Origin: Selaginella moellendorffii | Taxonomy: Eukaryota; Plantae; Lycopodiophyta | Assembly: GCF_000143415.4 (NCBI RefSeq) | Contig: NW_003314297.1 | Coordinates: 186,001-250,000 of the forward strand | Reading direction: 5' to 3' | DNA length: 64,000 bases | In this document: one piece after another, positions 16,967 through 54,760 of the stretch | Position numbering within the stretch: position 1 is the stretch's first letter | How the letters are laid out: each line of letters begins with the position of its first letter | Position numbers and translations under genes: made by a program | The notes under the pieces: model-generated | Database searches by the model: none | Seen by the model: only the letters and a program-made list of their open reading frames with translations | What the model was told of the DNA's origin: nothing

Positions 16967-19900
16967 CTAGAAATCCCTGAAACTCATCCGGGGATCTTGG
17001 TGCTTTCCTCGCCCGCCACCTCTCCCTCCACCCCTCCCTCGCCCTCTCCCTCGTCCTCTCCCCCTCCCTCTCCCCCTCCCTCGCGATCGCCCAAAGCTCT
17101 TGCCGTGCTTCATCACCACCAGGGACTGCAAGAGCTCGTCGCAGACCACGCACGCCGTGTGGAGCGTCCTCCCGCCCTCCAGCGGCGTGTTGTTCTTGTG
17201 GAAGTCCACCTCCAGGAGCGCCGAGCCACAGTCGTCGCAGTAATCGTGCTCGCTCCTCGACACCTTGTGCGTGTTGGCGGGGAGGTAGACGAGGAAGCTA
17301 CACTTGTTGCAGTCGAGCCTCCACTTTGGCGCGCTGATGGGATCCAGGATGAGCGTTCCATCGCACTCGGGGCAAGCGCACACTCCCTGCTGCATCACCG
17401 AGTGGCGGCACGTCGCGTGAGGACACATCGTGCATGGCATCCCCGCCCCTGTGGCTGCTCGTCCCCGTCTTGTGTTTGGATTTCCATCGCCAGGAGCAGT
17501 GCCACTGGCTTGATCATCGCTGGAGGTTGTGGCCTCGCTGCTCGGGTCTCTTGCTGGAGATTCCAGAGGGTGATTGTAGCAGTAGGGACAGAGGGGATAG
17601 GATTTCCCGTCGGGTCCTCCGAGGGAGAACAAGACGAGCTCGAAGTTGTCAAGTGGACAAGCTAGCTCCTTGTAGAGCTGAGGAAAAAAAGAGTTTTTTC
17701 TTAGCGTGTCTATTCCCTGGAGAAGGATTACCTTGATGGAACCATTTTGCGGGACCGGGTATACTTCCTCGCAGGTTGAGCAGTAGAGACGAGATGGCCG
17801 CAGCGTGATGTATTTCATGTAGCGCTTGCATTTCCCACACTTGCTCAAGGGCCGTCCGGAGTCCGCGAGAGGAGAGAAGTGAGCCTCGAACAGAGCGTCC
17901 ATCTTCTCGATCTATGGAGAGAAACAGTTGAGAAACTTAGAAAACATGGTGCTTGCCTCGGACACGAAGTTCTTGAACTTGGCGACGAACTTGTCCAGCG
18001 AGTTGCGCACCACGGTTTCGTGATCCACCTGACCTTTGGCAATCAGCGTGATTTGCTGCTCTATGAAGCTCCGGATGTCCGGGAGGCATAAATCCGCGTC
18101 GATGGTTTGATAGCCTCGAATGAGTGTTATACCGAGAGCAGTAGGCACAAGGCGCCTTCCAGTTTGTACCTTCGAGAAAAATAGAAGAAAAAAAAACACA
18201 TTTTTAAACAACTCAAAAACAGAGAGAAAGAAAGAAAGAAGAAAGAAATCTTCTTTTACCTGTACGTAGTTTCTCTGGCATATGTTGTTGATATGCACTG
18301 GAATGGACGCGTCCGTACCAATCCCATGCTTCTCCATCAGAGATATCAGGTCGCTCTCAGTCAAGTAATCAGGAGGAGAGGTTCTTCCCTGACAAGACCA
18401 AGACGAGAATAAAACAATGGGAAAAGCTTTGAGATGGTATACCTGGTAGAGCTCAACCTCTGAGCAAGGAAGACTCTCGCCAATAGTAAACGCAGGAAGA
18501 TTTTCGTCCGTGACAGCCATCCACGGCATAGCTATTGTGAATCCCGGCGATGTCACAACTTTCCCCGAGCAAGTGAAAACCTCGCCTCCACCGGAGAAGG
18601 TAACTTTCGTCCTGCGTTCCTCAAGCTCAGCAAAACTAGAAGAGAATGAAAAATTCTTAGCTTACCGCTTATACTTGCAGTCCGGGCTCACACTCCCAAG
18701 AAAATGCCTGGAGATGTAATCGTAGAGCCTCCAGGCATCTCCTCCAAGCTCGGACTCGGTCCCGGAACGCATTGGAGTGATTGGAGGATGGTCGCCAGCG
18801 TCGGTGCCGGACTTTGGGGCTCGAACGCCAGCAGCTATCAACGATCGAGCGTAGTCTCCAAAGACGGGATGGTTTCCCAGTGGAAGCAGTGACTCCTTTA
18901 CGTCAAAACTCGCCGGGTAGGCTGTGCTCTCGGTCCGGGGATAGCTGTTAGTTTATTCATGAGGACAGAAGAGCGAAGAAGAAATGGCAAACCTTATGTA
19001 TCCTTGGACGTAGAGACGCTCCGCAATTTGCATGGCGTGGTGAGGACCCATGCCAAGAGCTGTCGAAGCAACCTATCGAAAGAAAACGAAAAAGAATGGT
19101 AAGTATGTGGAAATCTATCATATGGAGCGAACCTTGAGCATGTTGACAGTGTTAAGTCCCGTTGGACGAGCCTTTCGCTCCTCTTTTTGTGAAACATCGA
19201 GGACTTTCAGAGAACCGCTTTTGAGCACCGCTTTCTGAGGGACTAGAGCTGTCTAGAAAACACGCAAAACTTCATACCAGAAGTTGTGAAGATGAAATAG
19301 AAGCCTTGCACAACTTACTGCCTGTTCGAAGACTCTCCCGCGCTCCCAGTCCAGTTGCAGCGAGTGTCCACCTTTGCTCAAGCGCGGATGCAAAGTCCAG
19401 AATGGCTTCGGAACGAAAGTGATGATCTGAGTGTGCCGCTCCACGCAAAAACCAAGAGTTGGAGTCTGGCAAGGTCCAAAACTGTTGTGAAGCAATGAGA
19501 AAACACAACACGAGAAGACCAACTTACGAGATGACGCTCGAGTCCAGGTTGCCGTATTTTCCTTGAAAGAAACGAGTCTGGAAGCGAGTGAATGCCACTC
19601 CAACTTTTAAATCGATCTCCTGCCGAGCATCTACCGCAAGCGCCTCGTTTTGGTTTGGCTCAACCAGGCTGCTCATGGCAGTCTTTACATCCTTCTCGCT
19701 CACAGCGGAGAAGCGAGCTCTGAACACTTGCTGTCCGGATCGTTTCTTCATGACAGGCAAAACATTCTCCATAACTAGAAAAAAAACAAAGATGTCTCTA
19801 GAAAGAAAAAGAGAAAACCAGTAATAAGAACCTTCAAAGCAGATGTTTTCTCCTTCTCGGTCGCAGTCGAGCCACAAGACAAGGGAGTCGCAGCCGCGAG

Positions 19901-20471
19901 CTTCTTGCCTGAGATGCTTGCAAACGTGAGCCTGAAAAGCAGACCAAAGGAGAAAAAAAGAACAGGAAGATCACACAGTAAGAATAAGTTCATTGCCGAG
20001 TGAGGTTACCTTGGGATTTGCTTCGTTTTTCAACGTAGGAGCTCCGAAAAGATCCAATGGATCCGTCAGCTCCCAGTTCTGATACTTTGGAGGAAAATCA
20101 ATGCTGGAAAATCCAGAAAGCTAGTGAAAAGAAGAACAAAGAAAACGAAGAACGACGGTTTCTCACCCATAGACATGACCAATGACAGAAGTAACCTTGT
20201 AGTGCGCTTGGAAACCTCTAAACGTTCCATCAAACTCGTGAACATCCAAGTAGGATTTCCTAGTGCTCATCTGAAGAAAATAGGAAAAGATTCAAGCATG
20301 GAATGAGAGAGCGAAAACTTTGAGAGACAAAAACTTACACGACCAGAAGAGAGAAACGAAGCCAGCATTCCGGCAATGCTGGGCTTCTCCGCCACCTACA
20401 AAACAAGAGCCCATCACCCAATCGAGAGACAGAACGGTTCTTTCACATACCATGAGGACGACGGGCGCCAT
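16967..20471 (-). CDS. TOP3B: DNA topoisomerase III beta
   Basis: Toprim MAPVVLM/VAEKPSIA; WLDCDREGENICFE; RQEIDLKVGVAFTRFQT; SYPRTEST; MEKHGIGTDASIPVHINNICQRNYV; C-terminal CxxC zinc ribbons and RG/RGG tail ending DPRMSFRDF*. Confidence 0.96.
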
Positions 20472-20518
20472 CGCTTGCTTAAACCCTACCTAGACTTCCA
20501 AGGCGGTCTAAAAAACGT

Positions 20519-22217
20519 TTATACTCGCGAGGTCACTTCTCCCGAGTCTAAAAAACTCCTCATCTCCTCTCTTATGCTCGTGAGCTCTTCCACCACTTCT
20601 CTCATCTTGGGTCTATTCGCTCCACACTCGGCCAAGCACTTGTCCGCCAAGGCGGCCACCCTCGCGACGCTGCAGCGCTCCACCGCGCTCACCACTCCCA
20701 TCTTGGGATCCACGAGCTCCTCAATCATCTCCATCCTTATCAGCGGCAGCGAGTAGAAGGCCAAGTTCACCCTGCTCGATTCCCTCCCAAAATCCAGCGG
20801 CTTTTGCCCCGTCACGAGCTCCAGCAGCACCACTCCAAAGCTGTAGACGTCGCTCTTGTCCGTGAGCCTGAAAGTGGTCATGAGCTCCGGATCGCAGTAG
20901 CCTGGAGTGCCTTGGATCCGGAGCGTGGAGACGTGCGTGGTGGCGGCAAAGTCGGCGACCTTGGCACTCAGGCTATCATCCAGGAGAATGTTGGACGATT
21001 TCACGTCGCGGTGGTAGATCGGCGGTGCCGCCACCGAGTGGAGGTACGCCAGCGCCTCCGCGGTCTCGATAGCAATCTGCAGGCGCTGCTCCCAGCCGAG
21101 AGGAACCACCCCTCGCTTGCACTGCAAGTGTTCCAGCAGCGTTCCATTGGTGACGTATTCGTACACGAGCAGTGGAGGGGCGTTTCGGCGAGTATCCATG
21201 CACCAGCCTTTGAGCTTTACCAGGTTCCTATGGTTCACCTGGGAGAGAATGGTGATCTCGTTGAGGAACTGCTCGTCCATGACTCCAAAGTTGGCGGAGC
21301 TTTTGCTGCGTTTGATGGCAACCACGGTGCCGTCTTGCAAGATGCCCTTGTAAACCGTGCCGAATCCACCGCTTCCCAGCTTGAACTCCTCGTTGAACCC
21401 TTGGGTTGCAACGTGCAAGTCCTTGTAGGAGTAAATGTGCCTTGCCTCGAAATCGTTCAGCCTTTGTGCGAGATGGGAGCGTTGCTGTCGGTTTTCGTGC
21501 AGTCTGAACCTGTAGACGTACGTACAGCAGCAGCCGAAGATCAGCAAGGAGCATACAGCAGAAGCTACACATAATCGATTAGAACATAACCTGGATTAAA
21601 AGTTTTAATACCTGATATTACAGCGATCTTTCTCTGTGAATGCCGGGTCAGGGGCAGGGACGTTGGAGACTGAGAAGTAATCACATCTAGAAACATAACA
21701 AAGAGACCATATAGAACTTGAATCATGAAATTGAGATGAATTCACCTTCATCATCTGTGATGCATAGAAAGAAAGTTGAATTGTAGCCCGTGTAGCCGCA
21801 AGTCCCTCCCGACTTCACACACTCCGCACACTTGAATGCACGCCTAGAATCTACGTACCAAGACACCTCTGTTGTGCACCGGCGATCCGGAACGAAGTTT
21901 GGGCTGCACGACTCTGAGAAATTGTTGAAATAGATGCCCGGGAGGAGATTTCTGATGGAGATGGGGCTCCTTATCTCGAGCTTTCTATCGGGGTAGAGAA
22001 TGGTGAGGGGATAATCAGCGCCATTGTTGAGAGTTAGCACGAGAGCGTTGCCAGTGCACTTGAGCAAGTGAGAGGGATCTCCGCATCCAAATTGCAATCC
22101 AAAGGGATAGTGCACATCTTGAATTCCGCAGGAGCTTGCACATTCTTTCGCAGCGCTACCAATTATTGCCATAATTCCCTGGTGTGAGAGCACTATAGTG
22201 AGCAGCAAGAGATTCAT
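20519..22217 (-). CDS. WAK-like/LRK10L receptor-like kinase (Cys-rich GUB_WAK-type ectodomain, TM helix, kinase with altered DFG)
   Basis: Signal peptide, CASSCGIQDVHYPFGL..CG and C..SGGTCGY in 21723-22217. Kinase exon with GSGGFGTVYKG, VAIKRS, HRDVKSSNILLD, QGTPGYCDPE and KSDVYSFGVVLLEL. Confidence 0.88.
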
Positions 22218-22804
22218 GCTCTTCCCGTTTTCTGAGAATGTAGATGACTTTGAGCCGTGAGAGGCACGGTGTCATGTGTGTGTTGAACCTCAGCACATTA
22301 TAATTTTTTTAATAATTATGGTTATATTACTTTTTTGGCTTGTTTAGATGAAATAATCTTTATTCCACTATAACCCAAAAGGTAATGGCTCAAGCATTTT
22401 GGGTTTTTTAACTTTTAAATTTAAAAAAGTGGGAGGGAAATCTTAGAGTGCCTTTTTTTTAAAGCATTTTATTTTGCCCTACATAAATTTAAGAGTATTT
22501 ATGATTTTTATAGCTTCAGTAGAAAAATAACAAGGAAATTTCAAAATAATCAAGATGTTATATAAAATGCCCACTATAAAGTATATTTCATTTTCTATTT
22601 TAAACTCATTTTAAATAAAATTTTCATTTAATCAAACATTATTTTCTTAAATGCTTAATCCTTTCATATCTCATTATTTTCTTTTTGTCAAATGCCTCTT
22701 TTAAAATTTTATCAGGTGCTCTTTTCATGCCACCATAAACTATAGCATTCAAATTTTAAAACTTTAATTTATTTATTTTTAAAATTTTAAATTTTAAATA
22801 AATA

Positions 22805-22891
22805 AATTCTATCCAATCCAACTCCAAGATATTCAACTTTAAAGCGAATGCTTTAAAGTTGAATATCTTGGAGTTTGGATGGGATAGAATT
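22805..22891. repeat. Near-perfect hairpin palindrome
   Basis: 22820-22845 (aactccaagatattcaactttaaagc) pairs perfectly with 22850-22875 around a 4-nt loop (gaat). The stem extends imperfectly to about 41 bp. Confidence 0.9.
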
Positions 22892-23079
22892 AATTAATTA
22901 ATTAAAAAAAATAAACAAGGAAAGAAAAGAAAAATAGTGTAAAAGGAGATAAAAAAAGAAAAAATAAAGGATGAAGAAAGGAAATGAGCTAAATGGAATA
23001 ATCATTTAGTGTTATAATTAAATTTAAAATTAAAATAAATTTTAAAAGTCTATTTAAGCTAAATTTCTGTAATGTTTAT

Positions 23080-24620
23080 CTAAAATTTATAGTTTGAAGG
23101 AAACAAACATAAGAAAAATGTGGAATGATTATATGGAGAATAAAATTCACAATAAAATTTTGGAAATAATAGGTAAATCCTTTCCTTTTAAATATCTAAT
23201 TTATATATAAAACATGTATATATTTATTATTCTTTATAAAATATTATATGTATGAAAAATGCAAGTTTTATGATGCCATAAATGAACTTTTCTCAAAGAA
23301 ATTTTAAATGAAGAAACTATTCATATTAGCTTTATTAAAAAGCCATTGACAATGGTAGATATAGAGTTGTTATTGATGACACAAGGTTGAATAACACTAA
23401 AAGACTAAGTACTTAATACAAAAAAGTGAAGATTGAAAATGATAAGAAGGATTCATCGATTGAGATTATCAAAAGCATAAAAAAAAAGATAGAATAACAT
23501 TTTTAAATTATGAAAGTTATACAAGCCCCTTTAATACTATAGTGAACATGCTTTCAAATATTTTATTTACCTTTTTAATGTACTAAAAGTTAATTTAATT
23601 TTCATCCTTTGAAAAATCAATCCTTCCTAAAAATTGATCATGAATTTTAAATAATGTTTGTGCTTGAGCATCACAACATTCAACATTTCTCTATACTTCT
23701 TTACTAGCTTTAAACTGATCAAAATTTATTTAGTGCATGTTATAATTTGTTTCCAATGTCTGGATTTATTGTTTTGATACAATGTAATTTATATATTGTT
23801 ACACCATTGATTTTCTAGAACTTTTACTTAAATGATTGAATGCATTACAATGCCTTTTTTTCATATTGTCAATCTCATTAACTCCTTTTTTATTTGATCA
23901 ATCCATAAAAGATCAAAGCCACCACCATGAGTTTTACATAAGATATAATATATAGTGATGTGATCTTTGATATTATCATCATTTTATTTCAAAAGAATTA
24001 AAAATCTAACAAAACTCATTTTTAGTTAATAATATAAAAAAATTACTTGATTTTAACATGCTAAAATCTCTTTCTTCTTATGTTTAATTGAATGTAGTTC
24101 TAATTTTGTTGGCATATTTTTAACCCATCTTTCAATCCTTTATATAGATTAAACATATATGGGTGTGATGGATAAGTTACATCTTTTATTAGCATATATT
24201 TGTTAAGGTGTCCTTGTATAAGTCTTAAACCAATGATATATTATAAAATAACCCTTTCTTGTTAAAATAATCATTTATAATTGTATCATCTTACATATGG
24301 TATTCCTCTAAGCTCTTTAATTTCCTTTGAAAGTGATTGCATGTGATTATTAATACAAATCTTGCTAAACTTAATATCAATTACTTTAAACAATTATAAA
24401 CTAGCTTGTTATGCAATAACACACACTTGTTTTCTATTTTTTCAATAATGTTCTTATTTCTAACTATGTTAAGGCCATAGCAACTCTAGTCTCTACAGAA
24501 TAGCCCTTCAAATCTTAGTATCTTTAGTAAACAATCACTTAGATATTCTTTCACAAAAAAAATTGAAAGCTATTTTAGAAACTCATTACCTTCTTTTAAA
24601 CATATTATTGCTATAGGATT
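23080..24620 (-). mobile_element. Decayed PIF/Harbinger DNA transposon (DDE transposase remnant on minus; possible Myb/SANT ORF remnant on plus)
   Basis: Minus-strand relics in the expected order: KDTKI*RAI/VETRVAMALT*L (24461-24525), GIPYV (~24292-24306), NDYFNKKG (~24252-24275), YMLIKDVTYPSHPYMFNLYKGLKDGL, *NYIQLNIR and FSMLKS (~24050-24200). Plus-strand LYGE and FYDAINELF near 23130-23292. Many stops and frameshifts; termini not found. Confidence 0.6.
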
Positions 24621-25200
24621 GGATTAAAATATAATCAATGAAAGAGCTAGACCTTTTATAAACTCATACCTCTAAAGAGTGACATTCATAATTGATAAAT
24701 TATGCCACAACTTCAATAATATAAGATTGCAATTGGTAAAATCAAGAAACAAAACTTTGAGTTGATAAAATAAAAGGGTAGTAAATAGGAGTTTTTATTT
24801 GAAATCTATTCTCTAGAATTTTAATTGTCAAACCTTGTAATATTAATTTAACATGAAAACCATTAATAGAATAGGGATTAAGTAGATTATTTTAAGTTTC
24901 AAATGCAGATTGGAGTGAATTATTGCACATGGGTGCAGATATATATTTTTATTTTTAATTGCTATGGCAAAATATATGTGGCTGTAGTTTTTGGAGGGTA
25001 CACCTCTTGGTGGGTGATAAAAATTTTATTATGTTGAAAGAATATATCTTGTGATCTTATATATAAATAAATATAAATATTTTTTTAATCTTTTGATATT
25101 TATTTACTTTGTAGAAGGATCTTCCACAGCCAAAAATGAAATCCACACTTCCTTACATTTACAGAAGACATCACTTGAAATAAGTCCTTGGGTGCAACAT

Positions 25201-25222
25201 TGAATGAATGAATGAATGAATG
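25201..25222 (+). repeat. (TGAA)n microsatellite
   Basis: tgaatgaatgaatgaatgaatg. Confidence 0.8.
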
Positions 25223-25963
25223 GCAGCCTTTGTGATCATAAAGAATGTCTTGGCCACCATGAAATAGAAGGCCACTATATCTGTCCTGATTTGTCTAGAT
25301 TGTGGCCATGGCGCTCTGCTACTTGAGCTTATCCTACACTACTGGCTCGATTGCATCAAGTACACTGCCTAGCAGCAGGATTGTGTGCTTCAGCTCATCC
25401 AGTGTTGCAATCTCTATCAATCTGATACTGATGTCTTATAGTGTCTACTGTGGGATTCTACTCCTCTTAATCAAACCCTCATTCTTGGTGAAGGTGTGTG
25501 GCATTTGCAATTCTTGAATGTTCTAAGGTAGAGATTACCTAGACTCATTGACACCCAGGTGCATGTAGCGGTTGAAGATACAATGGCCAGTGTGTAGAGC
25601 TCATGGCCAAGGCTCTTTTGGTTGCTTGGTTTAGTTACACCTTTTAATCAAGTTGATAGATCAATCATCTTGCCATCCATTCCTGCCATTCTTGCCAAAC
25701 TTAAAAGCAAAAGAAAAAGTAAATAAATTAATGTGGATTAAGAATTAATGCATTCCAATATATGCCTTGAAAAAAGTGGCATCGTGTTTAAACACACATA
25801 TGTTTTAAATTGATATATGTTGCATTATAATACATTTTTTTGCCACATTGCCCACCTCCTTACTTCCCCTAAATCTTGCAATCATTTGATAGGACGCTGA
25901 TAAGAAATGTTTAGTTCCTATTGCTAAAATGCATGAGTAGCTGGAAATCACGAGTCTTGCATC

Positions 25964-26066
25964 ACCGAGTGGAGGTACGCCAGCGCCTCTGCAGTCTCGA
26001 TAGAAATCTGCAAGCGCTGCTCCCAGCCGAGAGGTCCCTTGCACTGCAAGTGTTCTAGCAATGTTC
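25964..26066 (-). pseudogene. WAK-like kinase fragment (same-orientation copy of ~21033-21145)
   Basis: accgagtggaggtacgccagcgcctctgcagtctcgatagaaatctgcaagcgctgctcccagccgagagg aligns with the kinase exon, with a small deletion. Confidence 0.85.
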
Positions 26067-26105
26067 TTGTAAATTATTAAAAACAATATACAAATGGTTT
26101 TTAAC

Positions 26106-27244
26106 AAGATGAGAGAAGTGGTGGAAGAGCTCACGAGTTTCGTGGAAGAACTCACTCGAGTATAAGAAACATAGCTAGGGTTTATGGTAGCAAGCGATGG
26201 CGCCCGTCGTCCTCTTGTCCGTTCTGTCTCTCGATTGGGAGATGGGCTCTTGTCTTGTAGGTGGCGGAGAAGCCCAACATTGCTGAAATGCTGGCTTCGT
26301 TTCTCTCTTCTGGTCGTTAAGTTTTTGCCTCCCAAGGTTTTCGCTCTCTCATTCCATTATTGAATCTCCTATTTTCTTCTTTTGTGGCTTGGAACACTCT
26401 CCTCCCAGGCCGGGGATTATGTTCACGAGTTGTCAGTCTTCAAGATGCCGATTAAAGGTTACTTCTGTCACTGGTCATGTCTATGGGTGAGAAACCGTCG
26501 TTCTTCGCATTCTTTGTTCTTCTTTTTACTATCTTTCTGGATTTTCCAGCATTGATTTTCCTCCAAAGTATCAGAACTGGGAGCAAACAGATCCATTGGA
26601 TCTTTTTGGAGCTCCTGCATTAAAAAACGAGGCACTCGCTTCCAGACTCGTTTCTTTCAAGGAAAATATGGCAACCTGGACTCGAGCGTCATCTCGTAGG
26701 CTGGTGTTGCTTTCTCATTGTTTCACGACAGTTTTGGACGTTGCCAGACTGCAACTCTTCTTCTTTTTTTTTGCGTGGAGCAGCACACTCAGATCATCAC
26801 ACTCGTTCCGAAGCCATTCTGGACTTTGTATCCGCGCTTGAGCAAAGGTGGGCACTCGCTGCAGGTGGGCTGGGAGCGTGGGAGTGTCTTTGAGCAGGCA
26901 GTAAGTTTTTTGGAAAGCTTTTTTCTCACCTTCACATCTTCTGGTATGAAGTTTTGCGTGCTTCTCTAGACATCTTTCCTCAGAAGGCGCTCAAGAGCGG
27001 TTCTCTAAAAGTCCTCGATGTTTCACAAAGGGAGGAGCTAAAGGCTCGTCCAACGGGACTTAACACTGTCAACATGCTCAAGGTTTGTTCCATATGATAG
27101 AGTTTTACATACTTAAAGATTCTTTTTCATTTTCATAGGTTGGTTCCACAGCTCTTCGCATGGATCCTCACCACGCCATGCAAGTCGCATAAGGTTTGCC
27201 ATTTTTTCTTTGCTATTCTTTCCTTCTCCTAGACAAACTAACAG
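26106..27244 (+). pseudogene. TOP3B: Inverted partial copy of the kinase 3' end plus TOP3B 5' half (pseudogene)
   Basis: Reverse complement of ~20608 to ~18945, introns included (atggcgcccgtcgtcctc, gtggcggagaagcccaacattgc, ctccaaagtatcagaactgggag, ccgcgcttgagcaaaggtgggcactcgctgc), with internal deletions including ~19591-20020. Confidence 0.9.
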
Positions 27245-28046
27245 TTGCTGGTTCTCAGTTGTTGGCAAGCTTCCTCGTCCAGAGGACGCAAATAGAGGAA
27301 ATGGAAACAAGCCGCACCTGCTAATGGCGAAACCAACGCCAATGAGGAAAGATTACACACTGGAGAGTAAGTATTTCTCATTATCTACGTTGGCAATATT
27401 TATTTCGATAAGCTACTTGCCAGGTACAAGTTTGCGGTGTACTAGGGGCGTGGTTGATCATGCTGGTTTTCAACTCGTTCTTGATTGTCCTTCCGGTCTC
27501 CGTTGGGCGTGCCATTGTCACTTCGTTATCTCGCCTTCCAAGGGGTGCACACTGCAATGGGGTAAAATGAGAAATCTTCTGTCGCTGCTTCGTCATCTGG
27601 GCGGCAGCTGCAGCGGTCCATAGTAACTATTTGAGTTCGCATAAGTTCTCAAGTGGTCAGCCATTGTGTTGAAGATTGTCCTACTCCGTCCTCTCGCTAT
27701 GGGTAAGTTTTGTTTCTACTGTTCCTGCTACAACTAGTTCTCATGACTTGTCGACGATCAGGTGATTGTCATTCCCGTTCTTATTGGTTTGCTGTTTGAG
27801 CTTCTGGTGGTGGTGCCACTGCGTGGATGAAAGCCCACTCCACTGATGCTTTCTGTTCTATACCACAAGCAATGGCAGGCCAGGCAACGCTGCCGATGGA
27901 TTATCCCGGCTCCGCGGGAAGCCTTTGAAAGCGCCGAGGAAGAGAAAGGTGGCTTCTCGGATGGGGAAGCTACGGCCGGGGCTGGGGCTGTTAGTCCTAT
28001 TGCTCCCGCGGATCAAGCTTCAAGGAAGGAATGATTGTTTGTATAC
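27245..28046 (+). pseudogene. SUD1: Inverted, deletion-ridden copy of the SUD1 3' half
   Basis: Reverse complement of ~31095 to ~29715 (cttcctcgtccagaggacgcaaatagaggaaatggaaa; gtgattgtcattcccgttcttattggtttgctgtttgagcttctggtggtggtgccactgcg; gccgaggaagagaaaggtg), introns retained. Confidence 0.9.
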
Positions 28047-28060
28047 AAGTCAGAGATCTC

Positions 28061-28580
28061 ATGAACCACCCTTTGAGCTTTACAAGTTTTCTGTAGTTCA
28101 CCTGCGAGAGAGTGGTGGTCTCGTTAAGGAACTGCTGCTCGTCCAGGGCCCCAAAGTTGGCGGAGCTTTTGCTGCGTTTGATGGCAACCACGGTGCTGTC
28201 TTGCAAGTAATCCACCGCTTCCCAACTTGAACCCCTCTTTGCCTTGGGTTGCAGCAACCCCTTTCATGTGCAGCAGCAGCCCAAGATAAGCAAGCCAAGA
28301 TAAGCAAGGAGCATGCAGAATAAGCTGCACCACCTTGGAATACTCCACCTTGATTAGAACATAACATTGCCGCGATCTTTCTCTGAATGCCGGTGCAGGG
28401 AAGGGCAATTGGAGGCAGACACATCTAGGAACAACACATCGAGAATCTACGTACCAAGACACCTCTGTTATGCATCGGCGATCCGGGACAAAGTCAGAGG
28501 CGCATTACTGTTTGGGGCTCCTGATCTCGAGCTTTCTCTCGGGGTAGAGAATGGTGAGGGAAGTTAGCATGAGAGTGTTG
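28061..28580 (-). pseudogene. Same-orientation, deleted copy of the WAK-like kinase N-terminal half
   Basis: Matches ~21198-22050. Translates to YLQDSTVVAIKRSKSSANFGALDEQQFLNETTTLSQVNYRKLVKLKGW, and the ectodomain piece SWYVDSR is present. Confidence 0.88.
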
Positions 28581-29733
28581 TAAAAGGGATCTTACTGACC
28601 AAATTGCTGACCAAAATTGTCCAGGCAATCCACCTCTTCACTCTTGCGGACAAAGATCTCTAGGGCAGTCGCGGAATGATTCTCCGTTGTCGCCTCTCGT
28701 AATAGACTTGGTTCGTGTGATGCATTTGCCCTCTACTGCGAGCATTCTCTCCCAAGCTCGAAAGTCTGCCAGGCTCGATCGAATTACCGTTGAGCATAGG
28801 GAATGTTTCTTCCATACTCACCAAAGAGGAGCCATTGCCAGCGGAGAGTTCATGGCGGAGCTGGAGCTCGTTGTCCGCGATAGATCTGTCAGGTGAGGTG
28901 TGTGTGCCGTGAATGGCGACGAACAATCGATGATACGCTCGCTCCCACCTCAGGGTCGCCCAATCCCTTTTTGTCAAGCCGACTGAGAATTTCCAGCGCA
29001 GTGAGTGGCACTTCTTCCATCGCCAGTGCCCTTGCTACCTTTGTTCTTTGAGCGGCCCTCCTCCATTTACGTCTGGTGCTACAGCGATCTCAACTCCTCC
29101 CCGGATATACGTGCATGAGAGTTTTGCGTTGACAGGATCGCTACATCTATGGCGAGTGGTCAGTGCGTGCATGTGGGAGTGATTTGCATGGATACCAACA
29201 GGATCTTGAGGTATAAAATGTGGGATGGCATACCAACTTGGTGTTGAGACCTACCTTCTGCTTGTCGATTCAGCCAACTGGCGTATCATGCACTTCGGAG
29301 TTGATTCCAAGTGCATGGTCAGAGGTGGAGGCACCAGACTTGAAGGAAGTTCAAGAGCTTGCTTGGTTCTTTCTTTCTCTTCTTACTAGAAATTTTGGTT
29401 TCCAGCGAAAGACTGGACCTTCAACCACGGTGAGGTCTGCTCAAATCTTTTCTTCTTTTGCTCTTTGTTGCTTTGCATCAGCCACAAACTTGAGCAATTG
29501 AGTTGCATGGTGCTGTTGCCTACTTCGACATTACGGCAGCCTGAAACCTTGGTCAGAGTTTGCTTAGCATTTTCTTGATTCGATGGGAATAGCTATGCAT
29601 CAGCCTCCTTTGTTACAGGGAGCAATCTGGGATGGAAAACTGCTCGGTCGACTCAGGGTGCTCCTCTTTCATAATCTTTTCTATAATAATTTACACACTG
29701 CTTTACTTCCGAGTATACAAACAATGATCCTCG

Positions 29734-32700
29734 CTATTCCTGCCTCAAAGCTTGATCCGCGGTAGCAATAGGACTAGCGGCCCCGGCCCCGTCCGCAGTA
29801 GCTTCCCCATCCGAGGAGGCACCTTTCTCTTCCTCCGCCGCCACTAGCGCTTTCGAAGGCTCGCCATAGTTGTGGAGCCTCTTGCCAATGAGATACCTGT
29901 CATCCCTGATCGCGTTGTGGACGTCGAGAAACAATTGCCTCAGCTGCCTCAGCCCATACCAGCCAGTTAGCAGCATCAGCGACCCGGCCCACGCGAACCG
30001 ATAAACTGCCGAGTTGATGAGGATGGAGAGGCCCAGCGCTGGAAACAGTCCCCGAGCAGCGACGTATGGGATGCTGAGAGCCGTCAGGAGCTTCACCAGC
30101 ACCGGAGCTACAATCTCCTGGAAAACCCACCACCCCCGGAGCCGGGAGAATCCATCGGCTTTCACTTGCTCGAACTTTCGCCTCCAGCTCTCGTCCGTGA
30201 GGAGCGTCGCCTGGCCCGCCATTGCCTGTGGTATAGAACAAAGAGCGCAAAGGCATCAGTGGAGTGAGAAAGGAGACAGCACAAACAGCGTACCAGTCGA
30301 GTCCAGATTTTCAAGAGGACGAGTCCGAGAGCCCAGTCTTGATACAGCAAGAAGACGGGGCTTTCATCCACAGGCACTCGCAGTGGCACCACCACCAGAA
30401 GCTCAAACAGCAAACCAATAAGAACGGGAATGACAATCACCTGATCATCGACAAGTCATGAGAAGAAACAAGAACAATAGAAACAAAACTTACCCATAGC
30501 GAGAGGAGCACGACGCTCTTCGACACAATGGCTGACCACTTGAGAACTTGCATGAAAAGAACCCACATGTCATGCGTCCTCAAATAGTTTACTATGTAAC
30601 GGACCGCTGCAGCTGCCGCCCAGATGACGAAGCAGCCGATATTAAACGCATAGAGATCTGAAATAAAGAAATGTTAGATTTCTCATTTTACCGGAGCTGT
30701 GCGACATACCATTGCAGTTTGCACCCCTCGTGATTGGAAGGCGAGAGAACGAGGTGACAATGGCACGCCCAACGGAGACCGGAAGGACAATCAAGGACGA
30801 GTTGAAAACCAGCATCGTCAACCACGCCCCGAGCAGAAGCAAAACAATGCGCACCGCGAACTTGTACCTGGTAACAGCAGTTTATCGAAATGAATACTGC
30901 CAACGTAGATAACGAGAAATACTTACTCTCCAGTGTCTAATCTTTCCTCGTCGGCGTCGGTTTCGCCATTAGCAGCTGGTGGTGGTGCGGCTTGTTCAGC
31001 AACGGCATTTCCATTTCCTCTATTTGTGTCTTCTGGACGAGGAAGGAGGTACTCGTAAAGATCGAGAGCCTTGCCCACAACTGAAAACCAGTAGAATAGA
31101 ACAGCCTTGATGGTCGCTCTTGGGCGGAAGTGTTCGAGAGCGAACGGTATGCATATATGAAACAAGAGCATGTCGGCAGGGAGCTCAGTAAACGGATCCG
31201 ATACTCTGCAGAAGAATAGCGTTCAGTTGAAGATAGATCAAACTTATGATACAGCTTTACCTTATGTCCAGAGGAAAAACGGAAAAAGCTAAATGCGTGG
31301 CCACTTGAACCGGAACAAACACCAGTAAAACAATCAAGCTTCCATACACGACCACAGAGAGAAGTACTCTTCTAGCGTGCTTATGAAGCGGATCGTCAAT
31401 CAAGTCGCGGAAAGGATTGTAATTTGGATCCGCCGGGTCACGCAAGAAATATAGGACTCCAGGGCGGAGAACCTGAAACTTAAAACCATTAGCATGAACT
31501 AGAAAACCCGGAAAAAATAGCAACTCACCTCACGCAACAAGCTCACAAAAATGCTTATCTGTAGCATGTAAAATATGCCGACCAGCCAATGCAGAAGAGA
31601 GCTGGTAAGGGGTGAGGCCCAGAAGAATGCAACTCGCTGTGCAAAGGACACCTTTAGCATAGCCAAGGTGCAAACGTCGAGCCACCATCCGCAAACCAAA
31701 GGAAAGACGCCGAGCTCGATGACCAGAAGGAAAGCCACCTTGAGCATCGTCGCCACATACCTCACGCAACCGATAATATGTCGGAACAAAGAAGGGGCAG
31801 CTTCGGCTAGTGACACCACCCCGCGAATTCGTCCGACCATAAGTGGCTCACCCCTTCCATAGCGGACGAGAAGTATCAGGCCGAGATAGAAGCTCAGCAG
31901 AAGAAAGATGACTCCATAGCCGACCGCGACGGTTGCTGCGTCGGAGAGCTGGATCGCAGTTACGAACACCTCGGCCATAGCATCGTAAACCGCAACAGCC
32001 TTGGCCACAACCTCCACTGGTCCTTCTGAGCGAGCAGGAGCTTTGCCAAGATTTAATACCGAGAGAAAGATACGGCCGATGGTAAACGGAACAAACGCAA
32101 CTATTCCCAGGAAAATGGCATTGCTTGCTAGAACCTGAAGAAGAAGAAACAAAAGAAGTGTAAGCAAACGAGAGCTTGGACTAGAAGAAACAAACTTACA
32201 GTGACCGCATTCTCGATCAAATGGTGGATCGGTCCCTGCATTCCAACGAGCTCGTCGAAAGGAACATCCTCAGCACCATCTGGATCGTCGGCTTCAAACA
32301 TCTGTTCCACGTGAGCTTCTATCCGCGCTGCGACGTTCTCAGCGTTCCTCCTGATGATCTCGCCAGCTCCAGCGGCTAGTCCCTGTCCCTGCCCAGCACC
32401 GCCATCGCCGTTCGCGGGAGGAGCGTGCTGCTGCCTATCAGCCTCCTGGCCAGCCACCTCCCGGATGTGTCTAAAGTACTCTCGCAGCGACGTTGCTCCA
32501 AGAAATATAAAGACGATCCCGGCCGAGATGAGGAAGCCATTCAAGCAGTCGGCGAAGAGGAAGGCCGGCGTGAGGAAGCGGGTGACGAAGAGCTTCTGGG
32601 CATCACCGAGGCTTCTCACGAAAGTCATCCTCCAAATCCAGAAGGTGGTGAAAGGGATGAAGAGCAGCCACACCGACAAGACGAGCACGAGCCTAGAGAA

Positions 32701-35301: not shown

Positions 35302-35428
35302 TGAAGGTAACTTTCCTCCATCGCAGCCCGATCCTCAACCCGCGAGCTTTTTGATCGATGCTAGGCACTTGATTCCATGAAGATTTTGTGAACCCGCGAA
35401 AATTTGGTCGAATAAAATTGAAAGAATT

Positions 35429-35510
35429 CGTGAGCGACAGGATTGGAACCTGCGCGGGCAGAGCCCACATGATTTCGAGTCATGCCCGATAACCACTCTG
35501 GCACGCTCAC
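35429..35510 (-). tRNA. trnS-CGA: tRNA-Ser(CGA), variant T-loop and D-stem
   Basis: GTGAGCG acceptor stem, anticodon loop CT-CGA-AA, long variable arm. T-loop is TTCCAAT instead of TTCGAAT. 82 nt. Confidence 0.85.
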
Positions 35511-35573
35511 ATTTAAGGTGATTAGCACCGAATATTTCAAGAATCTATGCAGCGCCAAAGAAAGAAAAGTTTT

Positions 35574-35655
35574 CGTGAGCGGCAGGATTCGAACCTGCGC
35601 GGGCAGAGCCCACATGATTTCTAGCCATGCCCGATAACCACTCCGGCACGCTCAC
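35574..35655 (-). tRNA. trnS-AGA: tRNA-Ser(AGA)
   Basis: GTGAGCGTGCCGGAGTGGTTATCGGGCATGGCTAGAAATCATGTGGGCTCTGCCCGCGCAGGTTCGAATCCTGCCGCTCACG; canonical cloverleaf with long variable arm, 82 nt. Confidence 0.93.
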
Positions 35656-35849
35656 GTTACGCATACATTAAATTTGCTAATTAGCTATAGAAGATATAGC
35701 ATTTCTTCATGGAAATTCTTTCTTTTCTTCTTTCTTGCCGATCACCTAACCATCGCTGGAACGCAAGAGCGATGGATCGACCGAGGCGGTGAAGCGTCGG
35801 CGCCATTCCAGGAGCTTCTCTTCTCTCGATTCGTCATGGACGCGGATTC

Positions 35850-42109: not shown

Positions 42110-42260
42110 CTTGCAATATATAAAAAATATGTTAAATATTCTGGGATATTTTACCATTTAACAGTTATTTAAATTAATTTTGTGTTTATAATTTATAAAC
42201 TTTTCTAAACACTTTTTAGTGTATTCTAATTTAAACACTATTATAATTATAAACTTCCAT
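42110..42260 (+). repeat. Dispersed AT-rich repeat, copy 1
   Basis: ttaaatattctgggatattttaccatttaacag..tttataatttataaacttttctaaacactttttagtgtattc is the diverged reverse complement of ~54645-54760. A partial copy lies at ~47950-48050. Confidence 0.7.
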
Positions 42261-45857: not shown

Positions 45858-48800
45858 TGAGGAAACGCGTCGTTCCTGCGCCCCTTCTCACATATGGACG
45901 ATGGACCGTGAGGCAATTTCCTAGCTTTGCTTTCCTAGCTGCAACTGGCACAGCAGACATATCCACGCAATCAGATTCTGACGGTGAGGAATCGTACTGG
46001 GAAAAACGGAAAAGAAAAATGTACCTTGTGGAAGCAGCAGTGATGAGAAGAATTCATCCACCCAGTAACGGTGTGTCGCCCTTCAATCAATCACAATGTA
46101 GCTTCGGCACCGACGAGTTAAAGGCAAGGAAAAGGGATGGGGCAGAAACATATGGTCCGATCGCCTGCGCCCAACACAAGCAACGCAAGGGAGCAATCTT
46201 TTATGCTCTACCAGTAAAGAATTTAAATATGGGGAGAAAATTTCTCACCTGGATTTGTGTCACTGACCGAGGAGATCGAGAAAACACCGCAGTAGAAGCA
46301 TTTAAAATCTCCTCTCGTCAAAGAAAAGATGCCGCTGCCAGAAAGGACGAGGAGAAAAACTTTTGGCCCCCTGCGACTACTGTAATATTTCGGCAATGCC
46401 GCCGCAAAAGCACCTCACCAGCCGCTAGAATCGAGATTTCCCGGAAGAAAACTACGCAATCAGCACTAAGAACAGTGGATTCCCCGGCCAAGAACACGGA
46501 TTAAACCCGAAGATCGGACGCGGCCGTCGCGGCGCCAGGCGTGCCACGACGCGGATGGAGCTCGCGCCTACGATCGATCGATGACTCACCCGCGACTACT
46601 CTCGCTAAAACCCTGTTCTTCCCTCTCTTCTTTCACGATTAACCCCAATGTCCGGTCGAGGGGGTTTAAATTAAAGGTAAATTTCAAAAAGCGTACGTTT
46701 ACCCTTTACCGGTACCGGCGACGTGAAATTTGAACCAAGTGTGAAAATGAGATTTGGCGCAAAATTGGGCAAGGGAGCATGACCCATGATAAGACATGAC
46801 AGTTGAGCTGTATGTGGGCCATGAGAAAACAAAGCAAAGAACCAACTTAAATGAGTCATGGGTCATGCAGCGTGGTGGCGTCGTCGGTTCGATCCTTTTG
46901 ACTTGCTCTACGTCAGTTCTTAATTGTTGAAAGCTCTTGTATAAACTAATTGTATTTGTATTGGTTTGCTGAGACGAGCCAGAAGTTGTCGAGTGGACAA
47001 GTTAGCAGCTGGGAGAAAAAAAATTCCTTGGAGAGAAAGGGAGCATCAATCTATAAAGAAAAACTTAGCAAACACTGAAAAACAAAGTGGCAATAAACAT
47101 ATCCAGTCAGTTGCACACTTTGGTTTCGTGAGTTGGTGCTCTATGAAGCTCCACATATGAGATAAGGACCTGAGGCCGGGTTGAAAGAAATGATTCTGGA
47201 AGCCAGTGAATGCAATCTCTTAAGCACCCACTAAGAAAGAAATAAGATATGCTTGCAATCGTGGTAAGAAAAGTTTGGAGTAAAATCAAACAAGAAAAGT
47301 TCTACCTAAAAAGATACATTTGTTGTTTATCACCTATAGGTAAAGAATATACCTAGAATATTTAAGTCACTTTACAGGAGTAAGATTGGAATAATCATCT
47401 TCCCTAAGAGGTTACTGGCAAATCATGTTAATCTTCTAAAGAATTTCTATTAATTGTTGTGCTTTTAAATTCAAATTCTAAATGAATGCTAAATCAAGCT
47501 TTTTCCAATGCTACACACAGAAAAAAAGAACTATGCTCAAAACCTAATCTAGAAAGACATTCATCAAGAGTGTGTAAAAACCAGTTGCAACAAATTATGA
47601 TTTTAATTATATATCCCACCATCCAAATACATGCTCACCACAAAAACACATTAACCAACTTTTGGAGTGTTCCACATTCTTTATAAGATGGCTGAGTGTC
47701 TTATGGCTTGAATATGCTTCTAGCAATAAGATTCTTTGCTAAAAGAAATTCCATAATCTTTAACTTTTGATTGATAGAGATTCTTGCTAAAAGATTTAGT
47801 GAATGGTAAGCTTACAGTTAGAAGCCTCTAGTGGAATTAAAAGGTTAGGAAGATCCATATCCATGTTAAGGGTTTCAACTTTAATTTAATTGATATAACT
47901 AGTCTTTTTTAAAATATTATTTTGTAAAGCTAAAAAAATTCTTTTTGGTTATAAACATTCTTAAACACCTTTAGGTAAATTCTAGCATATTTTATTATCT
48001 AAAGTAGAATGCATTTAGATTAATCTTTTGTTTTTAAATTATACATATCTTAGCAGCAAAGCCTCACTCCTAGTTTCATCCAGCTTGACACCTCCACTGT
48101 CACAAAATGGCCCCTAAGTTTTTGAAAGTCATGACAAAGTTATAGATATCATAAAATTTATCACCACCATCACAACATCACTTATAAATCCTTATAGAAT
48201 TCTATGCCTCATTTTCAAGTGTGGTTAGAGCTGTTTAAACGTTTTGGCTATCCCAAAATCCATGATCTTGAGCAAGAGGTTGAGAAGAGCCAATAGTATT
48301 AGGATGATACTTAGCTTTATTGAGTGAGTGCAAGCACTTCAAGCCTTGAGAGATCTAAAGTTATATTGACATAAACTAAGGCTAAGAAAGGTCACACAAA
48401 GCTTTCTTCTTGTACTTGAGATTGCTAGATTAATACTTGAGGCTATTGTCTCTTGACATGAGGATGTTGGAGCTATGTGTAGAGCTATTCATTTTATAAG
48501 AGCTTAAAGCATATCTCTATTTGAAGGCTTCAACTTCCTGGATGTATCCCCTACATCTCAAAAGTCAAGTACTTCATCTTTTAATTGAATGAAAGTGTTG
48601 GGAATGTGATTTTGGGTATTGGAAGTTATCTACTAGTCAGTCCTTACGAACACTCTTTTGCTTACTATCATGACGGCAGGAGGTTGGTATTGCTTATTCT
48701 TTTTATTAACCCCTCTTGTTAAAATGTTAGTAAACTAGGTTTAGCACTTATATTTAGCCAGATAAATATAAGGTAGGAACTTCTATGTATTTCTAGCTAA

Positions 48801-49999
48801 TTATACTTGGCTTGGCTCTTAGTTCTGTTTTTGCTTTATCTTGCACTAGTTTGAAAAGAACCCTTGCATATTGAGACTAATCTTTCAATATCGGATAGTT
48901 TATTGTGTTTGCCAAACACCTATGTTATTATGCCTTTTATGTTAGTCTCATTTCGGTCCCAAATATTATTTATAGAAAGTGTTTAGATTTGCTCATTTGG
49001 CATATTTATAGAATGTAAAGATTATTCTAAATATAATGGTGTTCATCCCATGTCCAAATTTGCAATCTAAAGACATTCCATATTTAATAAGTTTTGAACT
49101 TGTCCTAGAGATTAACTCCCAATACTAAAGGAGGCTTGGGGTTGGGGGGGGGGGGGGCATGGCAATATAGGGGGTTCCAAATGTATAGTTGAGATAGTGG
49201 ATAGGTTAGGCATAGCTGACCAACTTGAGACATGGTCTAACTCTCGCTTGCGTGCCTGTTTTTGTTCTGCATCTAGCTTAAGTCTAAGCTTAAGTTCCAC
49301 ACCATGCTAGCTAGTGGAGTACCTATATCCTTGTGTTAGGCCACTGGTATACAGAAATAGCGCAAAACTCCATTTAACTCTGTTTTGCGTGTTGGTCCTA
49401 GTATTGGGATGTTAGATGCTTTAAGATTATTCTAAGTTGCTCTGTGCTCCTATCCTTTCGCTCCTTAGGCTATACATTTGGAAGTTAATCCATGCTTTAA
49501 TACTATTGCTCCTTGGCTCCATACTTGAGAGTTTGGCACCATTTTTTCATTCAGTGGCTCAAGGTCTTGAAACTCAGGTTCTACACTATTGTCCTTGGGA
49601 TATATAGCATATAACATGTGGCACATGAAGGATTAAAGTTCTGCTTCATGGTTATTCTATGGTAAATCACCATAAAATAAAGGGTAAAAACCACATACAC
49701 TACAAAAAGCTACATTAATATCTTGGATGCAACTATGGGTTTATTGCTTGAAGTTGGTATTGCAAAACATTTATCTTATTGAAAATTTTCCCAACTTTGC
49801 AAGCTTGTTGTAGGTAGAGTTATGCAAGAGCTTATGGAGTGATGTTTCAGTTTTTGGTTTTGATCCCTATAAAAAGCAAAAATAATGGTTTTCTTCTCTA
49901 ATAGATGAATGGTAAAACTTAACAAACCCATTATCTTGATATAAAATTTTTGCCTTTGATGTTGTTGAGACACAATTTATCTACTTATTTACACAATGA

Positions 50000-50750
50000 A
50001 ATAGCTCAAGGTGAAGATACAAATATGAATAACTATAATGAATATGATTTTTCTTCTATATTCTATGGTAGTCTACTATATGATAACTTTGAAGTGGAAC
50101 TTCACCCTTGGACACACATATTAAAAGCAATGGATGAGACCCAAATTTTAAAATATTGGACCACTGAAGAAAAAGAAGGAACTAAATGCCTAAGTATATA
50201 GCTAAGGAGAAAAGAAACAATATCAAATTCCTAAATATATAATTAATGAGTAAAATAATAGAAGCATATAGTAATATTGAATAGTCTTAAAGTTTTTAGC
50301 ATCCTAATTACAACACTAATAAGTAAAATAAAGCTAAATGGGGGTTTGGCACTATTTTAATATACTAATGGCCTAAAGTGAGCTAGTATAGTATATAGAG
50401 CTTAAAATTATATCTAAGTTGGATGCAAAACAAAAATTGACATATCTAGTAGGGAGTTAAACAATACCTCAAGTTGGTCACTTATTCCTAACCTATCCAT
50501 ATACATTTAAAACCTTCTATAACCCCTCCATAAGAAAGCACATTTTTAGCTTTCACCCCAATCCTAGGAGATAGTCTTTAAGAAAAACTTGAAAACTTAT
50601 TAAATGTAAAATCGTGCCAGATTACAAATTTGGATGCAGAATAATACTATTGTGTTCAAGACAATCTTTATATTCTATAAATATACCTCACTAGTAGATT
50701 TAGGCACTTTCTATAAATAGTTAATCATATTAAAATAGAATTAATCTATA
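50000..50750 (+). mobile_element. Possible highly decayed LINE ORF2 remnant in an AT-rich block
   Basis: Only weak motifs (KIKLNGGLAL ~50326-50355; WMQNNTIVFK ~50632-50661) in a stop-riddled AT-rich region. Confidence 0.25.
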
Positions 50751-54574: not shown

Positions 54575-54760
54575 TGTATGTTTGTAATTTATAAACACAA
54601 GATTAATCTTATTTCATATCAACCATTAGATGATAGAATCAAAAAGAATATACTAGAAAGGGTTTAAGAAAGTTTATAAATTATAAATACAAGATTAATT
54701 TAAATCTGTTAGATGGTAGAATATCCTAGAATATTTAAATATATTCTAAGTATATCCACT
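54575..54760 (-). repeat. Dispersed AT-rich repeat, inverted copy
   Basis: Reverse complement aligns with 42110-42260 and 47950-48050. Confidence 0.7.

Follow-up and report, generated by a model that had tools for sequence, protein, structure and literature searches.

Replicative template switching, by microhomology-mediated break-induced replication (MMBIR) or fork stalling and template switching (FoSTeS), produces chains of templated insertions that draw on local templates in both orientations, bring copy-number gains and return to their start, and kilobase-scale patches of gene fragments made by synthesis-dependent strand annealing (SDSA) are reportedly present in grasses. Plant filler DNA at double-strand breaks is a mosaic taken from nearby sites with a deletion at the break, classically 1–131 bp long, and examples include maize p2/p1, wx, bz1 and R-r (PMC2686159). 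In insertion duplications through extrachromosomal circular DNA (eccDNA), a change from the order AB in the source to BA in the copy (AB→BA) is the published diagnostic of the circular intermediate, the cattle colour-sidedness translocations being a cited example (Takahashi & Innan 2020, PMC7188851); the preprint 10.64898/2026.09.03.749254 likewise treats AB→BA as diagnostic of circle insertion. Here we describe a patchwork of gene copies at 25963–28581 of a 64,000-nucleotide stretch of the Selaginella moellendorffii genome (NCBI RefSeq assembly GCF_000143415.4, contig NW_003314297.1, positions 186,001 to 250,000 of the forward strand), which we call the window and whose coordinates are used throughout. 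The patchwork is very probably a dead, non-transposon, DNA-level break-repair patch built from local DNA.

The patchwork shares features with each of these systems. Like filler DNA and SDSA patches, it is a mosaic of nearby sequence with a deletion at the recipient site, made of gene-fragment pseudogenes without transposon hallmarks; unlike classical filler of 1–131 bp, its filling measures 2 kb and lies inside a 1-kb fragment, and it shows what is probably a cyclic order, whereas cyclic permutation is not among the described features of filler DNA. Like MMBIR and FoSTeS products, it strings local templates together in both orientations and returns to the starting template. Like eccDNA insertion duplications (PMC7188851), it contains a block that is probably cyclically shifted relative to its source, with a head-to-tail closure joint, inserted at another site with no requirement for homology. 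Unlike in the described eccDNA cases, the DNA that received the insert is a duplicated gene fragment situated within the source interval. The host here is a lycophyte, and the event took place long ago and has since been blurred by decay.

Structure of the patchwork

The interval 25963–28581 contains nothing but diverged sequence copied from the three genes that flank it, a WAK-like receptor kinase, TOP3B and a SUD1/MARCHF6-like gene, and self-BLAST at three sensitivities found no better match to any part of it elsewhere in the window. A preliminary description of this DNA, made by reading its letters, had proposed four segments copied from these genes; all four were recovered by self-BLAST, which refined their coordinates. 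The donors, three in number, lie 1.1–7 kb from the patchwork and on both sides of it. Segment A (25963..26066, minus strand; blastn) copies kinase exon 3 in direct orientation, with its donor at 21032–21146, and carries 8 mismatches in 104 aligned columns and a single 9-nt deletion. It is followed by filler F (26067..26104, plus strand), 38 nt of AT-rich DNA, part of which matches the SUD1 3′ untranslated region (3′UTR). Segment B (26105..27244, plus strand; blastn and exon maps) is an inverted copy of 20609–18945 and contains the last 90 nt of the kinase coding sequence (CDS), the whole 47-nt spacer between kinase and TOP3B, and TOP3B exons 1–9 with introns 1–9. At junction J1 (27244|27248; blastn and junction reading), segment B gives way on the plus strand to 27245..28055, which begins with 3 extra nucleotides at 27245–27247 and continues as segment C (27248 to ~28055, plus strand; blastn and exon map), an inverted copy of ~31092–29696 with clear homology to 29713. 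Segment C enters SUD1 in mid-exon (~31092), passes through four introns and ends about 21–38 nt beyond the stop codon. Segment D (~28056..28581, minus strand; blastn, with tblastx reaching 22030) is a direct copy of kinase ~21186–22030 and comprises the start of kinase exon 3, intron 2 (of which a piece is kept), exon 2, intron 1 and part of exon 1. The outer edges at 25963 and 28581 are sharp, and neither blastn with 7-nt words nor tblastx found any similarity beyond them within the window.

Introns are represented in the copy, whole or in part: nine from TOP3B, four from SUD1 and two from the kinase. Intron retention had also been reported at first reading; because the copy aligns across the donor introns, the patchwork arose at the DNA level and is no retrocopy. 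A retrocopy or chimeric retrogene was accordingly rejected as a candidate, the introns being kept and the boundaries showing no poly(A). The retained introns, the mixed orientations and the presence of donors on both sides bear out the initial judgement that neither a simple tandem duplication nor a retrocopy suffices.

Segment A leaves its donor at 21146 and segment D picks it up at 21186, the intervening 39 nt (21147–21185) being missing; for this reason we regard A and D as the left and right halves of one kinase fragment. The layout is nested: a 1-kb internal kinase fragment, 21032–22030, is split and filled with a 2-kb inverted insert made up of F, B and C. The preliminary description had seen four pieces in alternating orientation; the copies and their orientations hold, and the alternating layout is replaced by the nested one. 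The kinase fragment has neither end of the gene and lies in the same orientation as the donor kinase gene, K1. The recipient site carries the 39-nt deletion, and its filling was pieced together from copies of nearby DNA.

The joint between B and C links source position 18945 to ~31092 in the same orientation and thus connects the interval 18945–31092 head to tail at its two ends, as circularisation or tandem duplication of that interval would be expected to do. The TOP3B side of this joint had been placed at an intron acceptor, correctly so: segment B stops at 27244, the copy of the last base of TOP3B intron 9, directly before the exon with the active-site Tyr motif. A breakpoint falls on a splice boundary by chance with a probability of about 3.5%, and about 8 breakpoints were examined, so the coincidence is unremarkable.

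Order of the insert

Positions 26068–26089 of filler F match the SUD1 3′UTR from 29695 to 29674, with 12 exact nucleotides at the start and 82% identity over 22 nt. The match shares the orientation of segment C and sits just downstream of the end of C in the SUD1 gene, and when the end of C was joined to F in silico, the product aligned as a single contiguous stretch to SUD1 across its stop codon and 3′UTR. None of 750 AT-matched real 38-mers from the window scored as high as F against the 70 nt downstream of the end of C. The cut site of eccDNA insertion duplications shows little or no gap or overlap; here, homology in segment C is clear to 29713 and possibly extends to 29696, F begins at 29695, and the intervening 9 nt align only with gaps.

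On the native minus strand, the order is SUD1 3′ half, SUD1 3′UTR, (spacer, kinase body), kinase 3′ end and TOP3B 5′ half. The insert instead runs F (29695 to ~29660), B (20609 to 18945) and C (31092 to 29696), and the spacer and kinase body are missing. Given that the F match starts where C ends, the insert probably, if on thin support, keeps the native SUD1→kinase→TOP3B order in cyclically permuted form (AB→BA), opened at 29696|29695. Models of the event are constrained by two re-used breakpoints, one in the kinase (21146/21186) and one in the SUD1 3′UTR (29696/29695).

Proposed origin

We propose that a chromosome break in the kinase–SUD1 intergenic region would have been mended with DNA from the same neighbourhood of roughly 12 kb. 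The interval 18945–31092 would have formed a circle (eccDNA-like) or a head-to-tail unit, with the kinase body lost internally. Once opened in the SUD1 3′UTR, this circle or unit would have entered the broken kinase fragment from one end to the other, through ligation or copying, by non-homologous end joining (NHEJ) or SDSA-type capture. Afterwards the patch would have decayed by substitutions, by methylation-type loss of CpG and by a strong excess of deletions. The preliminary description had offered three options, of which local template use in break repair fits best; a circular or head-to-tail intermediate was absent from them, and it is this mechanism that we infer for the insert. The reading as a whole, a break-repair patch plus an insert made through a circular or head-to-tail intermediate, appears to us evenly poised between right and wrong.

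Several considerations weigh against it. In contrast to the described eccDNA cases, the "B" arm on which the AB→BA order rests is an AT-rich block of only 22–36 nt, and the preprint 10.64898/2026.09.03.749254 grades cases with short terminal blocks as low confidence, a grading that applies to F. A rival match to F lies at 22299–22317 on the minus strand (19 nt with two mismatches), with about ten loci of the window giving matches to F of equal quality, so that the support F may lend is location-specific (p about 0.005) and was spotted post hoc. For the join of SUD1 3′UTR ~29660 to kinase 20609, the circle must also invoke either a second junction or the subsequent deletion of at least 1.7 kb, and an internal loss of that size is foreign to the eccDNA cases. 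The arrival of the kinase fragment itself at the site is left unexplained, and a replicative template-switch chain that revisited its templates would yield an identical sequence. At about 10% divergence, junction microhomology is unreadable, 0–3 nt being possible.

Age and decay

Divergence was counted only in columns inside local high-scoring segment pairs (HSPs), a global mafft alignment having inflated the mismatches beside gaps. The preliminary description had held that equal segment ages would support one event. Exon-site divergence was 0.077 in A, 0.090 in B, 0.066 in C and 0.102 in D, and homogeneity across the four segments was not rejected (p=0.20), a result compatible with one event. 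The comparison of A+D with B+C gave p=0.22. At non-coding sites, for which segment A had none aligned, divergence was 0.116 in B and 0.087 in C (p=0.37) and 0.305 in D; heterogeneity over all sites (p=0.007) came from kinase intron sequence in D, which aligned poorly. Within resolution, the four segments thus share about the same age, which fits one event or several close in time. If neutral rates are angiosperm-like, which is an assumption and not a measurement, the event dates to roughly ten million years ago.

Divergence in the copy is near-flat over codon positions and 10 of its 36 deletions are multiples of three, from which it follows that the patchwork was never under coding constraint. 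The copy measures 2585 nt against 4026 nt of donor sequence, a loss of 36% at about 9% substitution divergence. The many short deletions reported at first reading are real: inside HSPs there are 36 deletions to about 12 insertions (about 3:1), in addition to larger losses of 430, 349, 142 and 92 nt. The 430-nt deletion lies in B and runs from the end of TOP3B exon 4 to most of exon 6, and the 92- and 349-nt deletions of C affect exons d and e, the latter removing most of the last SUD1 exon. There was no excess of microhomology at the copy's deletions.

Substitutions at CpG sites were strongly asymmetric. CpG→TpG/CpA changes affected 29 of 242 donor CpG sites in the copy, compared with 5 of 192 in the reverse direction (p=0.0002, about 4.6-fold), and non-CpG transitions were symmetric between copy and donors. 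Such CpG-specific decay would be the signature of a methylated, silent copy.

Alternative origins

An alternative that we consider unlikely, while giving it real weight, is that one chain of replicative template switching (MMBIR/FoSTeS or multi-invasion SDSA) made the patchwork without a circle. Its path would lead from kinase 21032–21146 to the SUD1 3′UTR, on to the kinase end and TOP3B on the other strand, then to SUD1 and to kinase 21186–22030 before rejoining. The templates all lie within about 7 kb and in both orientations, copy number was only gained, the segments are equal in age, and such chains typically come back to their first template close to where they left it, here 39 nt away. 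The adjacency of the end of C and the start of F, too, could stem from a nick or an earlier D-loop at 29695/29696. However, the chain requires five switches. From the chain alone one would not expect the SUD1 copy to end where an earlier, short copy of the SUD1 3′UTR began, nor B and C to join the ends of one interval head to tail. The microhomologies (2–5 nt or more at each switch) that define MMBIR and FoSTeS are unverifiable in the patchwork, since junctions A|F, B|C and C|D offer just 0–3 nt and cannot be read, and the re-use of 29695/29696 together with the head-to-tail joint suits a circle better.

It is improbable that the patchwork records a multi-step history, in which an old tandem kinase paralogue (K2) or a larger TOP3B–kinase–SUD1 duplicate was reshaped by later inversions, an insertion and many deletions. 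WAK-like kinases often occur in tandem arrays and the copy is demonstrably deletion-prone, both of which favour such a history. Against this, the segment ages are indistinguishable, as the comparison of A+D with B+C indicates, the kinase fragment lacks both gene ends and its edges are sharp, and blastn and tblastx found no further remnants in the flanks. The signed order A, F, B, C, D would moreover need at least two extra rearrangements with coincident breakpoints, and the multi-step history is the less parsimonious one. For the collapsed rearranged duplicate suggested in the preliminary description, several additional inversions and deletions would be needed.

Two further schemes were tried and rejected. 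Starting from a tandem or inverted block duplicate, a single inversion fails to arrive at the order A, F, B, C, D. A symmetric fold-back, in which a break inside the kinase is followed by each end copying its own flank in inverted form, explains A|B and C|D well, yet it leaves F unpredicted and the recipient kinase copy is not adjacent to TOP3B; it was set aside.

That the patchwork is cargo picked up by a transposon (Pack-MULE, Pack-Harbinger, CACTA or Helitron) is most improbable. Pack elements and Helitrons typically carry intron-bearing fragments from several genes, and the patchwork likewise fuses such fragments, with the TOP3B and SUD1 pieces co-oriented; it also adjoins a 3.7-kb AT-rich, CpG-depleted block. 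Unlike such cargo, however, it lacks terminal inverted repeats (TIRs), which a repeat search of 22000–29800 failed to find around the insert, around the patchwork or around the AT-rich block and patchwork together. The insertion site shows the 39-nt loss (21147–21185) instead of a target-site duplication (TSD), and reading both strands at 25963, 26067, 28055 and 28581 revealed no Helitron ends of the type 5′-TC/CTRR-3′, which go with a 3′ hairpin and insertion between A and T. Every donor is local and adjacent, whereas transposable-element cargo comes mostly from unlinked loci, and the patchwork is single-copy as far as visible. The Harbinger relic that had been placed beside the patchwork was not recovered either: 22200–25965 contains no transposase-like open reading frame (ORF) and gives no tblastx match, and no transposase remnant was found in 22.2–25.96 kb. 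The proposal of transposon-driven capture, made at first reading, is thereby abandoned.

An assembly artefact, that is, a chimeric or collapsed contig, has a practically negligible probability, as the segments are 7–13% diverged from their donors and carry about 40 private deletions and CpG decay, and reads of real genes could not assemble in this way.

Coding and regulatory potential

The preliminary description had considered a chimeric transcript across the TOP3B|SUD1 joint possible. In the copy, the TOP3B exon-1 donor, both intron-2 sites and the splice sites of one SUD1 intron are gone, deletions have taken TOP3B exon 5 together with the greater part of exon 6, and frameshifts occur throughout. 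Since exons and splice sites are missing, a chimeric TOP3B–SUD1 protein is, judged from the sequence, excluded as a product of the patchwork, and the coding version of the proposal falls with it; non-coding transcription may still be possible. No public protein model matches an ORF spanning the TOP3B|SUD1 joint. A residual ORF of the copy, 26718–26969, still matches Topoisom_bac positions 39–93 (Pfam). Annotators should accordingly avoid placing a TOP3B–SUD1 or kinase gene model at the patchwork.

The copy keeps 26 exact runs of 21–67 nt to the TOP3B, SUD1 and kinase genes, and its CpG decay is of the methylation type. It is very improbable that the patchwork acts as a methylated natural inverted-repeat locus from which putative small RNAs would be directed against all three neighbours. 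A putative route would be read-through of SUD1, folding back on segment C 1.7 kb away. Were this true, a small-RNA locus arising from circle reinsertion would represent the one-step birth of a multi-target regulatory hairpin.

Donor genes

Pfam identified three minus-strand genes in the donor neighbourhood; the window is a gene-dense plant locus. Exons were checked individually by profile search and joined only locally for testing frame continuity; exon and intron coordinates come from three-frame maps, in which all donor introns are GT-AG and 46–78 nt long. The first donor, K1 (20519..22217, minus strand), is an intact WAK/LRK10L-type receptor kinase gene of 3 exons (Pfam Pkinase, GUB_WAK_bind and WAK_assoc, plus the gene model). 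Its kinase exon is 100% identical to database protein P0001 and 96% identical to SELMODRAFT_85468 of Selaginella moellendorffii, which lies on a different scaffold; the next-nearest K1 paralogue has just 57% protein identity. The second donor is an intact TOP3B gene (CDS 16967..20471, minus strand; Pfam Topoisom_bac and Zn_ribbon_TOP3B, plus the exon map), in which exons 6 and 7 each match Topoisom_bac in the exon-by-exon Pfam search, and its 5′ half, 18945–20471, is the TOP3B source of segment B. The third is the 3′ half and 3′UTR (29660..31092, minus strand; Pfam MARCHF6_C and exon map) of an intact SUD1/MARCHF6-like gene, an E3 ligase by Pfam with its stop codon at 29734; this donor is the source of segment C and probably also of filler F.

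The kinase stop codon (20519–20521) and the TOP3B start codon (20471–20469) lie on the same strand, 47 nt apart. Because only these 47 nt separate the genes, the TOP3B promoter and 5′UTR must overlap the kinase coding region or 3′UTR, or kinase and TOP3B must be co-transcribed.

Flanking sequence and other repeats in the window

Between K1 and the patchwork lies the AT-rich block (22300..25962; composition), with a GC content of 0.27 and a CpG observed/expected ratio (CpG o/e) of 0.12, which is context and not part of the copy. Within these 3.7 kb there is no ORF of at least 72 aa, and no protein-level match was found in the window; the block looks like very old methylated repeat DNA. It contains a 124-nt near-perfect palindrome (84%) at 22785–22908, for which Rfam gave sub-threshold matches to MIR7533 (46 bits against a gathering threshold of 230) and MIR477 (35 against 65). 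The palindrome is probably an AT-rich hairpin or resembles a miniature inverted-repeat transposable element (MITE), and is probably not a miRNA gene.

On the other side, a GC-normal 1.1-kb spacer (28582..29695; composition), moderately CpG-depleted with a CpG o/e of 0.69, separates segment D from the native SUD1 3′ end. Nothing else in the window resembled it, neither Pfam nor Rfam gave a match, no coding signal was present, and two phmmer matches to possible protein homologues were rejected as repeat-inflated and spurious. The spacer may be a decayed fragment from outside the window.

Further repeats occur elsewhere in the window. At 42116–42227, 47949–48041 and 54585–54755 there are repeats of about 95–115 nt, with 76–85% identity and in both orientations, which suggests a small MITE-like family. 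An inverted repeat at 2172–2373 / 2588–2772 has arms of about 200 nt at 78% identity, about 215 nt apart, and a direct repeat at 35421–35658 has a 93-nt unit at 91% identity and a spacing of 145 nt. Several direct repeat units of 146–260 nt (67–74% identity), GC-rich and G-skewed, occupy 60842–62336, possibly a gene for a repetitive protein. A second AT-rich block (48–56 kb) holds a 600-nt inverted pair at 48967–49557 / 50161–50719 with 65% identity, probably the remains of transposon ends or nested repeats.

Significance

The interest of the patchwork lies in mechanism, not in function. Here the mending of a break in a seed-free plant, with neighbouring DNA only and with re-use of breakpoints, has left a well-preserved natural record. 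A circular intermediate may have taken part, and germline-fixed AB→BA insertions have so far come mainly from mammals and yeast. The patchwork also provides a clean neutral yardstick, for deletion bias and for CpG decay, in a compact genome.

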